Part shown: in pieces, positions 7,162-13,219 of the stretch | Position numbering within the stretch: the stretch's first letter is position 1 | Layout: each line of letters starts with the position of its first letter | Origin: Octopus sinensis | Lineage: Eukaryota | Direction of reading: 5' to 3' | Length of the DNA: 64,000 nucleotides | NCBI RefSeq assembly: GCF_006345805.1 | Contig: NW_021836835.1 | Span: 1-64,000 of the forward strand | Translations under genes and position numbers: made by a program | Notes under the pieces: generated by a model | Seen by the model: the letters and a program-made list of their open reading frames with translations, nothing else | Databases searched by the model: none | What the model was told of the DNA's origin: nothing

Positions 7162-7216
7162 ATGATCTTATCGCCGATGATTTGTTACAAGGCGACTACG
7201 AAGGTTTGGATAAAAG
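7162..7216 (+). CDS. Internal coding exon (acidic propeptide) of an agatoxin-like/knottin peptide precursor: (x)DLIADDLLQGDYEGLDK(R)
   Basis: Pyrimidine-rich acceptor gtttttctgaatcttttccag, 55-nt open exon with phase-1 start and phase-2 end, donor AG|gtaaga. Its AG plus the first G of the next exon makes Arg, giving a KR dibasic site. Confidence 0.8.
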
Positions 7217-8197
7217 GTAAGACCTATATTCATGGAATTGTGTCGGGGGAATATAAATGTTGTTAATTTTATTGTTTTCTCCCTTGGAGAGGAATTATTC
7301 AAGAAGGTTTATCGTTAAAATTTGCTGGCGGCCAACTATAAACACATTGTTGGTGAGTCAGCGGTGGTGTATGGAGATTTGGAACGGATCTTCTTGGAAA
7401 CCTATTAAATCTTCATCAAATAAGACGGGTTTCATTTAGAAATCAGGCATTGGATAACGTAGCTATTCAATGTGTGTTATTCTGTGTACCTGTATGCGTG
7501 TGCGCGCGAATGTGTGTGCGCGTGTATGTGTGCGTGTAATGATACACGCTTATGTGTGTGCGTGTGTGTGCGTGTGTATGTGTGTGTGTGTGTGTGTAAG
7601 ACATTCATTTGTAAATAGTTAGTGCGTACTATCTTAGAGTTAAGAGAAGTCGTCTTCTATACAGTAATTCTTATATACATACACACGTGCGCACACGCAG
7701 ATATATATATATATATATATATATATATATATATATGCCACGGGATTCTTTCAGTTTCCATCAATTAAATACACTCACTTGGTCGGTCCGAGACTGCTGT
7801 AGAAGGCATTCGCCCACGGTGGCACGCAGTGGAATTGAGAAGAGATCTTCTTACCACACAGCCGCGCTTGTACACACACACACACACACACACACAGACA
7901 CACACATACATATATATATATATACATACATCTATAAGTATGTAAATGCGTCTATATGTATATATGTGTGTGCGTACGTGTGTGTGTCTGAGTTTGTCTG
8001 TGTGAATGTAAGTGTGTGTGTACCTCTATATAAAAACACCGATTAATTTACGTACGCACATTAAAACTAATTGATAATTCCATTAGAATGATGGTTTTCA
8101 ACATCATAACTACATAAACCTATCTGTTCTTGTGTTCTTATCTATTTCTCTCATCTGATTTTATTGTATTTTTTGTTTATACTTTGTTTTTTTACAG

Positions 8198-8269
8198 GGA
8201 TTCTTCTGATGTAGATCGTCGTGCTGTTCGTTATGATAAATTGAGCCGATTTTTACGAATCAATAACCG
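8198..8269 (+). CDS. Internal coding exon of the same precursor: (R)DSSDVDRRAVRYDKLSRFLRINN(R)
   Basis: Acceptor ctttgtttttttacag, 72 nt, phase 2-2, donor CG|gtaagc. In frame with both neighbouring exons; contains an RR site. Confidence 0.85.
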
Positions 8270-9014
8270 GTAAGCATTTCACATAATTTTCCCCTCGAAT
8301 GAACGATAAAATATTGAATATGTTTAAAAAAGAGAACGTTGCCCACTATCACCACCACACGCTCTTTCTCTTCCTAAACTACTCTTTCTCTTTCTCATCA
8401 TTTATTATCGACAAGTTTTAATTGTATTAAGCACGATGATGGACGTTCCTTATGTAGAGATCCTCCATTAATGCTTTTAAGAACATCAGAAATCAAAAAA
8501 AAATCACGCGCTATCATCCGTGTCTTCATTATGTTTTTTGGAAGTATTGCCAAGGTTCGTCTTACCATGCATTAATCACCGGATCCTGACAAAACGGTGT
8601 TTAATCCATATGCGATGAGGTTCCGTTGTAAGTACAGTCAAAGAGACATGCCTCGCAAGAGACTTACAAGAAGCATCAATATATATGCAATTTGAATTTC
8701 GTTTCAGTCGAGTCGTTCATATATTCATATATGCGTTTATCTTTTAGCTTTAAATGTGTTCCCTTATCTTTCTCTTGTCAGCTTCAATTTTATTTATTTG
8801 TAAATAACAATTAGCTTTATAATATATATACTTATAAAAATACATATATACATATATTTGTATATATAACGGAAGGCTTTATGAAAATAAACAAAAGACG
8901 AAGGCAGGTGGAATACAAACAAACAATTGTATTAGTATGGCGCTCAGGAATATAAATAAAACAAGTCTTTTATTTGTATATATACTTATATATATATATA
9001 ATATATATGTATTG

Positions 9015-9617: not shown

Positions 9618-12523
9618 TTACAATACATTTCAACGCTTCGAAAACAAACTTGTTTGCTTACATACGACGTAATTTATATATATATATATATATTATAATA
9701 TATAATATATATATGTGTGTGTGTGTGTTGTGTGTGTGTGTGTGTGTGTGTGGTATATAACGGTCGAGGAAAGCAATAAATAGAAACATGAAGAAACACC
9801 CTAACAAAGGCGTTACTAGTATAAAGTTTGAGAAGAAATGGAATCTCTCCTTAACGTTTCGGACACTATTCGTTCGTCAGGAAAAAGAAAATGGTGGAAA
9901 GTTGGTGGAAAGGTGTAAAAGAAAGGTGTAGAGTGCAAGTAGCGGATAAAAGTCCACAGCTTGGCCGTAGTCAGTAGGGAGAGTGAGGAGTATTAGTAAG
10001 AATGAAACGAGAAAGAAGACGAAGAAGATTATAGATCATAAGGGACTGGCTGCAGTGTAGAGAGTCAGAAAAAACTTGAGAGAACAACAAAATTACATAT
10101 CATGAATGAGAAAAAACAAGAAAGAACACAACAGTTTCTAGTGATATCTTTTGTTCTCGCGTGCGCTTATACCTCTTCGTATCTGCTTATGTATATAATT
10201 ATCCATATTTCGCTATATTCTGAGATTTTCAACTATGGTTATATCCTTTCGATGTTCATATTTGGTTCTATACTTGCCTATTCATCTTTGTATGATTGTT
10301 ATTCAGTTTTGATGATAATTCTCAATCGCTGGTTATATTCTTAGATCTTCAGCTTTTTTTTCATATTCTTTGTTGTTTAGCTTCGCTTATATTGTGTGGT
10401 TTATGTTTATTTATTCTCCGAATTCCTTATCTTTGTTTCAATCCATCAATATTTCATATTTATTTGTGTTCTTGGTTCATCATCTTTGGCTCTGTTATTC
10501 ATAATAGTTTCTTATAGTTTTGGTTCTTCAGATTTGTCTTGACACTTCGTTGTTTAATATTTTGCTAGATTGTCAGTTTTTTCATCGAAGGATAGTTATT
10601 CGTATTTGGTTTTGGTTTTGTTCACTTATGTTATATTTTATACACATTTTTACATATTTAGTATTATATTGTTCTTTCATATTTGATAATATCAGCCGTT
10701 TGTTTAAGATTATCTTCCTTGATTTTTTTTTTATATATCTTCTTATTCTTTGATATCAATGAATAGTTATATACTCGGCTTTTTCATCTTCGAATACATT
10801 AACAGTACTTCACCTTTGATAATATTGTCATTCCTGAACTTTAAATTTATTCTATTTTCTTCACCTTCATACTTTTTGTTGCAGTCTACTTCGGTCGTCT
10901 AGTGTGATCGTCTGTTTATCTAGTGTGATCGTCAGTCTACTTCGGTCGTCTGCTGTGATCGTCTTCCTCTGTGGGACAACAGTTTATATTTTGATGTCGG
11001 TTTCGATATTTGTTTCTCTATTTATGTTTCTTACTATATTCAGCAATCAGATTTTGTTTACCGATTTTATCTTACTTCGCTATGCTTCGATGCGCTCGTC
11101 ATCGGTTATTAAATTCTTCTAACTTTATCAGGATGTGTATTTTATTGCGTTTTTGATATATATCTAGATTTCAACTTCGTTCCCTATTTTTCATTATCTA
11201 ACCGAATTTTATATTTTTATCTTTGGTTAAATATCTTGTTAAGTTTCATGTTCTCGCATCTTTCTTGAAAATATTGAAGTAACTCGGAGATTTTTATTAA
11301 AACAAATTGAATATTGTACATACCCGACTTTCTGGCACCCGCTCAAAATATTAGCTTCAAATTTTAGCACAAGGCCAGCAGTTTTACGAGAGGGCGTAAG
11401 TAGAATGCATTGACCGCAGTGTTCAGCTGGTACTTATTTTATCAACTCTGAACGATGAGAGGTAAAGTGGACCTGGGCGGAATTAGAACCCAGAGCGTAA
11501 GGACGGAGGAAATGCCAAGCATTTTGCCTGGCGCGTTAATGGTTCTGCCAGTTAGCAGCCCTTGGAATACTGATTTCTCTGAACATTTTGAACTGAACAA
11601 AATTTAGTGTTTAATTGAAATATTCCAATCTGGGTCTCAATAATGACAAAATGGCGGGTTTTGTCAATCTTCCAATATGTGGAATAATGAATGTATGTAA
11701 TTAGATGTGAAAAAATTTACTTTTATATATAGACACCTTCATCAAAGAACATGGATGCCATTTGGTAAATAGAACAAGCTAATTAGTTAATTGCTTGATG
11801 AATAATTACTTAACTCTGATGTAAACAACATTCTACATTACTTCACTGATTGAGCTAAACATGAAACTACTAGCACACACACGTGCACGCGCAATCACAC
11901 ACCACACACACACACGCACACACACACATATACATATATATATATATATATATATATTATATATATATATATATAATATATATATATATATATATATATG
12001 TATGTATATATATATATGTATATATATATATATATATATATATATATATATATAATACATATATATATATATATATATAATATATATATATATATATTAT
12101 ATATATATATATATATACATATACATATATGACGATGCTGGCAAATGAAAGAACATGGCATTCAACACATTTCATAGAGTTACATGTATTATTTAATAAC
12201 AATTTCCCTCGATTCCACGCAGTATCATGAGTTACCTCGTTGCTCATATTGCCAGGCAGTAGAACTGTAAAAAAAAAAAAGAAATGTTTTCAAAGCAGCT
12301 TCTTAACCACACAGCTTTGTCGTGCCTAAAATAATTATACTTATAAGACTTGTACTGCAACCATTCATTCATCGTATCTAGAAGTTGTCATTCTGCGGTT
12401 GCTCTCCTAAAATTTTACTCGCCGAAAACTTTCTGTAAATTAATAATAATTGAGTTGGTAAGATGTTATTGTCCTGTAAAGATGTTTCAACAACAAGATT
12501 ATTATCAGTTCAAATATGTCTGC

Positions 12524-12858
12524 GGCATATTTGAACCCGCAAGAAAGCCATTCATTGAATTTTGTCATACAGAAAAGTTCTTAATTTCTTGCAGTATCAC
12601 ATATCATCGCCGCCAACCGGTAATTGATTTACAATCAACCGCCAGTTAGCGCTACCCGTCATTTTACGATGACTGGAATATCACGAGAGTGCGACAATCT
12701 CTCTTATCAGCTCGCAGCGCCTCTGTCGGGTTTTTGTGACTGAAGAGTAGATAACTGCCCCAGAGCGCTTGCATATCACAGACTGGGCAGGTGAAGCTAC
12801 CGCGAGAAATTTTCATGACAAAACAGTGAATGGCTTTTGTTACGGGTTCGAATATGCC
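12524..12858. mobile_element. MITE-like element with ~55-bp imperfect terminal inverted repeats, in the last intron of the knottin gene
   Basis: ggcatatttgaacccgcaagaaagccattcattgaattttgtcat matches the reverse complement of atgacaaaacagtgaatggcttttgttacgggttcgaatatgcc. Confidence 0.6.
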
Positions 12859-13065
12859 CCAAGTATATATAAACTGGTAGTAACCTTGTATTAATTCACC
12901 TCACTGCTTAGTGCTACTAACCTGTAAAAATTGTTATGTTGTTTATCCTTTTCTAGATCCTTAAATCCTTAAAAATGTTTTAGCCCGAAGGCTGCGGCCG
13001 TGCTGGGGCACCACCGCTGTAAAACTTTTTTTAATTCTTTCTTTCTATTTTTGTTTTATTTCCAG

Positions 13066-13219
13066 AGGAAAAAGTAAGTCACACAAGAACAGCTGCTCCA
13101 AATGGCAAATGGCGTGCACGACCAGCTCGAAGAGACCCGACGCTCGTTGCTGTTCAGGCCTTGTCTGTAAATGTAACATCTGGGGCGCGAACTGCCGGTG
13201 TGATGATACTCTTGGATAG
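13066..13219 (+). CDS. Terminal coding exon encoding an 8-cysteine inhibitor-cystine-knot, agatoxin-like peptide: (R)GKSKSHKNSCSKWQMACTTSSKRPDARCCSGLVCKCNIWGANCRCDDTLG*
   Basis: Long polypyrimidine acceptor ttctttctttctatttttgttttatttccag, phase-2 start, TAG at 13217-13219. Cys spacing C-x6-C-x10-CC-x4-C-x-C-x6-C-x-C. The CxCNxWGxNCRC motif matches my recollection of invertebrate ALPs. C-terminal Gly is a possible amide donor. Confidence 0.88.

Follow-up and report, generated by a model that had tools for sequence, protein, structure and literature searches.

The 64,000-nucleotide stretch of Octopus sinensis DNA analysed here (hereafter the window) carries most of a multi-exon gene for a cysteine-rich peptide precursor. 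This gene is very probably O. sinensis LOC115232215, the precursor of the second molluscan paralogue in the CCWamide/agatoxin-like peptide (ALP) family. Coordinates are those of the window's + strand, whose base 1 is base 1 of the O. sinensis contig VCDQ01004243.1 (71,982 bp; the first 68 bases are identical). The window has 36% G+C and many microsatellites, as is expected in a cephalopod genome, and a preliminary description of it, made from the letters alone, had rightly spoken of a probable octopus genome.

Three coding exons of the gene lie in the window, all on the + strand. Coding exon 2 (exon A, positions 7162-7216) is bounded by ttttccAG|AT and AAAAG|GTAAGA and is entered in phase 1 and left in phase 2. 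It encodes an acidic spacer, (D)DLIADDLLQGDYEGLDK, and closes with two bases of an Arg codon, the dibasic K-R site being interrupted by the phase-2 intron between exons A and B; its product is 100% identical to residues 24-41 of a 116-aa protein of O. vulgaris and O. bimaculoides. The following intron (positions 7217-8197; 981 bp, GTAAGA...ACAG) is rich in (TG)n, (TA)n and (CA)n microsatellites, and its O. bimaculoides counterpart measures 847 bp. Coding exon 3 (exon B, positions 8198-8269; ttttacAG|GG...AACCG|GTAAGC) is a symmetric exon of 72 nt, phase 2 on both sides, whose product is (R)DSSDVDRRAVRYDKLSRFLRINN(R). It is separated from the last exon by an intron of 4796 bp (positions 8270-13065; GTAAGC...TCCAG), which in O. 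bimaculoides is about 3.5 kb long with indels immediately 5' of the acceptor.

The last coding exon (exon C, positions 13066-13219; atttccAG|AGG...GGA TAG) is entered in phase 2 and contains the third base of the Arg codon, the residues GKSKSHKNS, an eight-Cys domain, a Gly codon and the TAG stop (positions 13217-13219). The cysteine-knot domain, CSKWQMACTTSSKRPDARCCSGLVCKCNIWGANCRCDDTL, covers 40 aa (positions 13094-13213) with the spacing C-6-C-10-CC-4-C-1-C-6-C-1-C and a Trp between Cys6 and Cys7. The C-terminal Gly codon (positions 13214-13216) is a predicted amide donor, from which the mature peptide would end in ...DDTL-NH2. Downstream of the stop, the sequence is well conserved with respect to O. 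bimaculoides, and positions 13220-13590 are a putative start of the 3' untranslated region.

Spliced together, the three exons yield 92 residues in the frame that starts at the third base, the other two frames being full of stops. These residues are exactly the product claimed in the preliminary description, and the exon limits, the AG/GT boundaries and the phases given there are likewise all borne out. They are 100% identical to residues 25-116 of the 116-aa protein found in O. vulgaris (CAI9738757.1, chromosome OX597835.1) and in O. bimaculoides (XP_014768200.1, LOC106867751, CM046622.1), both labelled uncharacterized or hypothetical in the databases; the 24 residues that precede them in this protein are MKTIIAFCFCFCVLISYALSYNED. 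The O. sinensis gene itself is annotated as LOC115232215 (721-13219 of contig VCDQ01004243.1). The gene had been called hidden, which is true only with respect to a prokaryote-style list of open reading frames (ORFs), as it is annotated in the three octopuses as LOC115232215, LOC106867751 and CAI9738757.1.

The claim of a multi-exon gene also stands, but the gene is incomplete in the window: it has four coding exons, the first of which lies off the 5' end of the contig. We did not find the signal-peptide exon in the 64 kb, either by a scan for ATG, donor and phase or by tblastn with the full protein. Its content is MKTIIAFCFCFCVLISYALSYNE plus one base, followed by a GTAAGT donor. The absence of this exon is explained by the fact that the window begins at contig base 1. 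In O. bimaculoides (record L003, 10001-10070; ATG...AACGAAG|GTAAGT, phase 1) it is located 14.4 kb upstream of exon A, and in O. vulgaris (record L002, at 74670) about 23.5 kb upstream of the last exon; at distances of some 14-18 kb from exon A, as in these two species, the O. sinensis exon falls off the contig. The exon 1 boundary, in phase 1, lies three residues past the predicted signal peptide, which was recognised by eye from the hydrophobic N-terminus, without a predictor.

The truncation has left its mark on the database model. The first exon of the 163-aa LOC115232215 model (positions 721-809, + strand) encodes MKNEFSVLATRKDEDFRRRRSEKPCLKIAR, and the model then reads some 120 bases of intron (about 7040-7161) upstream of exon A. 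An N-terminus without a signal peptide is the outcome, most likely a modelling artefact from the truncated contig. An older O. bimaculoides model (Ocbimv22001854 / UniProt A0A0L8HYW8; 184-186 aa, UniRef label 'EGF-like domain-containing protein') contains an additional low-complexity segment, 68 residues long, that separates the signal peptide from the spacer. No counterpart of this segment was found in the window, in XP_014768200.1 or in the O. vulgaris protein; we rejected it as a genuine exon on this ground, and it is probably a false one. The 116-aa form is thus preferable to both the present O. sinensis model and the older O. bimaculoides model. We did not find the defects of these two models described, which makes them a minor new point.

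Comparison between species indicates that the gene is constrained. O. sinensis, O. vulgaris and O. bimaculoides share one and the same protein sequence. At the DNA level, the coding sequence differs from that of O. bimaculoides at 5 of 281 bases, all synonymous (2 in exon A, none in the 77 nt compared for exon B, 3 in exon C), while the flanking introns have indels; with respect to O. vulgaris the last exon is identical and the introns differ by a few per cent. A transcript-like contig of 990 nt (L001, run SRR24189504) contains an uninterrupted coding sequence of 117 codons (46-399) whose product is 67% identical to that of octopus. At about 90% identity to a published sequence from Idiosepius notoides, the contig was assigned to a decapodiform cephalopod. 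The octopus and decapodiform proteins align without a gap across the 92 residues, continuously over both exon junctions of the window. Despite saturation at synonymous sites (proportions of nonsynonymous and synonymous differences, pN 0.18 and pS 0.79), all eight Cys and the CKCNIWGANCRCDDT motif are the same in both. By these substitution patterns the gene is under strong purifying selection. Conservation of the Cys exon in related cephalopods had been proposed as the check that separates a real gene from a pseudo-exon; the exon is conserved in O. bimaculoides, O. vulgaris and decapodiforms, and the window contains a single one.

As for the family, the spiralian CCWamides are orthologues of the arthropod agatoxin-like peptides (Thiel et al. 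2021, PMC8557429). The family is characterised by a short precursor with a C-terminal peptide, eight Cys, often an aromatic residue between Cys6 and Cys7, and an amidated aromatic C-terminus (PMC8557429). The octopus precursor has the layout that this definition requires (signal peptide, spacer, basic site, single C-terminal peptide), and the aromatic residue between Cys6 and Cys7 is present, as Trp in CNIWGANC; we took neither of the two aromatic features as strictly required for membership. The eight Cys columns are invariant in 89 relatives. Among 35 family sequences that we tabulated, the framework C-6-C-10-CC-4-C-1-C-6-C-1-C is the commonest (19 of 35) and matches most mollusc CCWamides. 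A loop 2 of ten residues is found in 25 of the 35, and a six-residue loop only in three arthropod ALPs and one annelid sequence. The preliminary description had given this loop its correct length but called it unusually long, whereas it is the standard spiralian spacing.

Similarity searches led to the same assignment. The Pfam profile Toxin_9 (PF02819; gathering threshold 21.3 bits) scored 26.4 bits with the 92-aa fragment and 25.1 bits with the full precursor, and the decapodiform orthologue and the canonical octopus CCWamide passed it as well. At E≤1e-3, a profile built from 18 family members retrieved 288 proteins. Names of the types U8-agatoxin-Ao1a-like, agatoxin-like peptide, toxin Tbo-IT2-like and xibalbin-1-like are common among them. 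With BLASTP, the whole precursor matched a chiton protein of the second paralogue group at 3e-15, signal peptide and acidic spacer included; the values were 7e-13 for the canonical octopus CCWamide and 9e-8 for a locust ALP, the latter over the C-terminal half only.

The gene structure points the same way. In the family plan, the signal peptide is in a first coding exon that ends in phase 1, the mature peptide is in the last exon, and a phase-2 intron lies in the codon of the basic cleavage site (PMC8557429). The octopus gene follows this plan, ...SYNE-(phase 1)-DDL...DK-(phase 2)-R...NN-(phase 2)-RGKSK..., plus one extra symmetric exon, a feature that one nemertean paralogue also has. The same K-(phase 2)-R arrangement is found in Tribolium, Centruroides, Crassostrea, Notospermus and Phoronis (PMC8557429).

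The gene had in fact already been collected with the CCWamides. The query collection of Thiel et al. 2021 (supplement 26, PMC8557429) includes octopusBimaculoides.Ocbimv22001854 and idiosepiusNotoides.285726, and its CCWamide block also has chiton, aplacophoran, monoplacophoran, bivalve and gastropod relatives; these entries stand between labelled nemertean CCWamides and the labelled Platynereis CCWamide. The C-terminal 92 residues of Ocbimv22001854 are identical to the translation from the window. Identifiers in the collection are formed like those of De Oliveira et al. 2019. We did not find the gene identifier in the text or the accessible supplements of De Oliveira et al. 2019. Taken together, the Toxin_9 score above cut-off, the profile matches and the placement by Thiel et al. 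2021 support membership of the predicted product in the CCWamide/ALP family, as the preliminary description had proposed. Gene, product and family were already public (three annotations, a published query collection and the 2021 orthology paper), and the description is a correct re-discovery: a reading of raw sequence recovered a correct spliced neuropeptide gene and the right family, and its value is mainly as a check and for annotation.

The name cephalopod ALP, although right as to the family, can be made more precise, since the mollusc name is CCWamide and the gene corresponds to a second paralogue. The canonical octopus CCWamide is another gene, which in O. sinensis is LOC118768477 (chromosome record CM016860.1), with three coding exons and a C-terminus ...CNLWMQNCRCVNKLWGG. 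The canonical cephalopod pair octopusVulgaris.32202 and idiosepiusNotoides.305035 ends in ...CNLWMQNCRCVNK(L/I)W. In a neighbour-joining tree of the Cys domain (40-residue alignment) the window peptide joined the Idiosepius orthologues with 95% bootstrap; this tree and the chiton and locust matches cover part of the family comparison that had been suggested as a check, and they agree with the family proposed. Judged by tree and sequence motifs, the window gene is a member of the second mollusc paralogue group, other than the canonical octopus CCWamide.

The 116-aa product is, by its sequence features, a prepropeptide. It opens with a signal peptide (MKTIIAFCFCFCVLISYALS...), after which come an acidic spacer with K-R at its end, a cephalopod-specific segment of 24 residues with R-R, the eight-Cys domain and Gly. 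Its basic processing sites are KR behind the acidic spacer, RR in the segment encoded by exon B, and one Arg, with further Arg at P5 and P8, whose codon spans the last intron. Idiosepius, the protein of the decapodiform contig (DDTIG) and the family at large retain the terminal Gly, so that a C-terminal amide is plausible; it would be a Leu-amide instead of the aromatic amide. This predicted Leu-amide end was not found described and is a minor new point.

These elements suggest the following course. The signal peptide would be removed in the endoplasmic reticulum, four disulfides would give an inhibitor-cystine-knot fold, and prohormone convertases would cleave at KR, at RR and perhaps also at the lone Arg whose codon the last intron divides. 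With conversion of the terminal Gly into the amide, a peptide of roughly 49-65 residues with a -DDTL-NH2 end would result, and fragments of the DSSDVD and AVRYDKLSRFLRINN types would be candidates for free precursor fragments. The peptide would be released as an extracellular signal, most likely by neurons or endocrine cells, and its target could be a G-protein-coupled receptor or else an ion channel, the kind of target that the related spider toxins have. By analogy with its relatives, a neuronal or endocrine signalling role is the most likely one for the peptide. Members of the family are broadly expressed in gastropod neurons, and peptides derived from a nemertean CCWamide precursor were detected by mass spectrometry. 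No receptor or function is established for any CCWamide/ALP family member (2026 review). CCWamide/ALP is an old protostome peptide family. Both octopus paralogues would be reasonable candidate ligands for receptor de-orphanisation, in an animal open to neurobiological study.

We modelled the fold with AlphaFold2. An alignment of three sequences gave a mean confidence (predicted local distance difference test, pLDDT) of 61, which is unusable; with the 89 relatives the value rose to 76.7, and to 83-88 over most of the Cys-rich core. In the model, residues 32-35 and 44-47 of the 50-aa peptide form a C-terminal beta-hairpin. Among PDB structures, Foldseek ranked spider knottins, omega-agatoxin IVB and the C-terminal knot of agouti highest, with template modelling (TM) scores of 0.5-0.73, normalised to the target, and a best E of 0.33, none of these matches being significant. 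The modelled fold is consistent with an inhibitor cystine knot.

Several observations weigh against the identification as a second-group CCWamide and a processed neuroendocrine signal. The amidated aromatic C-terminus of the family definition is absent: the precursor ends in ...DDTLG-stop, and the residue before Gly is Leu (Ile in decapodiforms). An aromatic end is also missing in several second-group members (-RIG, -RLG). Placement within the second mollusc group had a bootstrap of 59% on the 40-residue alignment. The Cys domain is not immediately preceded by a dibasic site (NNR|GKSK), which makes the mature N-terminus uncertain. The knot fold is a medium-confidence model at pLDDT 76.7, with Foldseek E values of at least 0.3. 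As to a neuronal source, oyster CCWamide reportedly has its main expression in the digestive gland.

The last of these points also bears on another role, namely that the peptide is a venom or digestive secretion of the posterior salivary or digestive gland, an endogenous signal recruited as a toxin as in spiders. Such recruitment has occurred repeatedly in the family, as in U8-agatoxin and the remipede xibalbins, and the window paralogue has lost the family's aromatic amide. However, venom peptides usually diversify rapidly and multiply as genes. A single Cys exon in the window, a protein identical in three octopuses and slow evolution across coleoids are the opposite of this usual pattern, and non-venomous molluscs (chitons, bivalves, monoplacophorans) also possess orthologues. 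When full texts were searched for 'agatoxin' together with 'octopus', no paper on such a cephalopod venom component came up, as judged by title and abstract. We therefore consider a venom or digestive role, which the preliminary description had mentioned as a possibility, to be unlikely.

Smaller still is the chance that the window gene is simply the orthologue of the canonical CCWamide, with no separate paralogue involved. Outside its own orthologues, its Cys-domain identity is indeed highest to the canonical cephalopod CCWamides (50-52%), but octopus carries the separate canonical gene LOC118768477, Idiosepius likewise has both genes, and the window gene is without the loop-2 P-W motif and the terminal Trp and agrees with the second group in its M-x-C and N/S-S-K/R-R features and in similarity over the whole precursor. 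This makes simple orthology with the canonical gene very improbable. Finally, pseudo-exons or a decaying pseudogene without a product could be suspected from the missing signal-peptide exon in the O. sinensis assembly and from the senseless N-terminus of the database model. The end of the contig accounts for the missing exon, which is intact in two sister species; furthermore, the synonymous nature of all 5 O. bimaculoides differences, the unchanged Cys and motif in decapodiforms despite synonymous saturation, and the uninterrupted coding sequence in a transcript-like contig leave the probability of a pseudogene close to nil. A second CCWamide paralogue with a probable neuroendocrine role accounts best for the locus.

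The extra exon of this second CCWamide paralogue deserves separate treatment. No counterpart of exon B was found in the same-group gene of the chiton Liolophura, which has three coding exons, or in published family structures. In Liolophura the junction reads ...DMDK-(phase 2)-R-EMLLKVPKC..., and the exon after the split is the last. The K-R-splitting intron of Liolophura sinensis (record L005, 17726-17803) apparently has a GC donor, AAAAG|GCAAGT, instead of GT. Exon B is kept in decapodiform transcripts, with an RR-flanked core, RYDKLS(R/K)FLR.NN, that is conserved. The 72-nt symmetric exon, extra with respect to the chiton gene, was not found described and is a minor new point. A comparable small variant is the five-exon nemertean paralogue (PMC8557429). 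Skipping of exon B would preserve the frame and give ...DK-R-GKSKSHKNSC..., with K-R directly before the last exon. By exact look-up in the protein collection we did not find the exon-B-skipped protein in its octopus or decapodiform forms, which is a weak negative.

It might be that coleoids inserted exon B into the ancestral phase-2 intron, thereby adding the R-R-flanked and strongly conserved segment (A/G)(V/M)RYDKLS(R/K)FLR(I/Y)NN, possibly as a second, bioactive and cephalopod-specific peptide or as a skipping switch between a KR-adjacent and an N-terminally extended knot. We put this forward tentatively, as a rather doubtful proposal. If true, the exon B insertion and the loss of the aromatic amide would be a cephalopod-specific change in the signal of this gene.

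A different isoform is annotated in O. vulgaris (protein P0003), in which a distal 3' exon swaps the whole knot domain for 16 residues. Its 8-nt micro-exon corresponds to positions 13066-13073 of the + strand, with a consensus GTAAGT donor at 13074 inside the last exon, and the counterpart of its distal exon is at positions 20994-21043 (+ strand), open to the same stop with 92% DNA identity. About 5 of the 16 residues differ from those of O. vulgaris, so that the distal exon seems unconstrained and is probably not functional. We judged this isoform to be transcriptional or annotation noise, given the poor conservation of its counterpart in the window.

Elsewhere in the window, a full-length match to U6 spliceosomal RNA was found on the + strand at positions 46396-46498 (Rfam RF00026; 82.3 bits against a gathering threshold of 44; model positions 1-105 of 105). 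This match, about 33 kb downstream of the peptide gene, represents either a U6 gene or a pseudogene copy that derives from U6. Six copies, at 71-74% identity, are present of a dispersed repeat that resembles a short interspersed element and is about 100 bp long, one in intron A/B (7737-7870) and the others at about 4929-5034, 32111-32213, 42400-42504, 51702-51797 and 62377-62481; microsatellites of the (CA)n/(TA)n type flank those copies that were examined. For the ORF at 54111-54539 (+), the similarity to reverse transcriptase was weak (E 9e-4 with Pfam RVT_1, where 19.4 bits falls short of the 29.6-bit cut-off), and the ORF is probably a decayed retroelement fragment. Two further ORFs, at 14099-14368 (+) and 16078-16503 (-), looked by eye like mariner/Tc1-type transposase remnants (for example ...LPYSPDISPSDFHLF...); they had no Pfam match even at E≤1. 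Tri- and tetranucleotide or low-complexity tracts, (CTA)n/(TAC)n, (CTG/CAG)n-like and (TGTA/TGTG)n, occupy about 500-700, 22300-22750, 28800-29700, 35000-35850 and 36400-37800. Microsatellite and low-complexity tracts yield the longest ORFs of the window, none of which is coding in appearance.

Among known systems, the closest to the window gene is the second mollusc group (Ocbimv22001854, idiosepiusNotoides.285726, the chiton 'toxin Tbo-IT2-like' proteins, and entries from Laevipilina, Ennucula and Scutopus). The Cys framework is identical throughout, and the group shares M-(P/A)-C and N/S-S/T-K/R-R in loops 1 and 2 as well as an acidic spacer with KR at its end. The O. bimaculoides entry has the same mature sequence as the window gene, and several members have, like the window peptide, a short non-aromatic tail with a final Gly. 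The tail itself differs: it is DDT(L/I)G in cephalopods and, for example, (R/K)(I/L/M)xG in other members. The canonical spiralian CCWamides (Platynereis, the Crassostrea Cragi-CCWamide, LOC118768477) have in common with the window peptide the eight Cys, CKCN(L/I)W..NC(R/K)C, the precursor layout, the intron phases and Toxin_9. They possess, in contrast, a loop-2 P-W-(S/T) motif and an -LW-amide end, of which the window peptide has neither, and they are encoded at a different locus.

More distant are the arthropod ALPs (U8-agatoxin-Ao1a-like; neuroendocrine peptides in insects, crustaceans and chelicerates). Their CC-x4-C-x-C-N-(L/I)-W-G-x-N-C-R-C half is nearly identical to that of the window peptide (63% identity to the locust ALP over 19 residues), and they share the three-part gene plan with a phase-2 intron in the basic codon; unlike the window peptide, they have a six-residue loop 2 and a longer ...GLFQKW-amide tail. 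The relation between CCWamides and ALPs is family-level orthology, not identity (PMC8557429). The spider toxins of the Toxin_9 family have the Toxin_9 score in common with the peptide, and matches to solved spider knottins (purotoxin-1, a mu-hexatoxin, omega-agatoxin IVA/IVB) were weak (E 0.01-1.6), with an ungapped stretch of 22 residues over the CC...C-x-C part among them. For omega-agatoxin IV, whose spacing the preliminary description had invoked, the similarity is also weak (E 0.43-1.6) and limited to the CC...C-x-C half. On this comparison we would not file the gene, a conserved single-copy mollusc gene, under the spider omega-agatoxin IV family.

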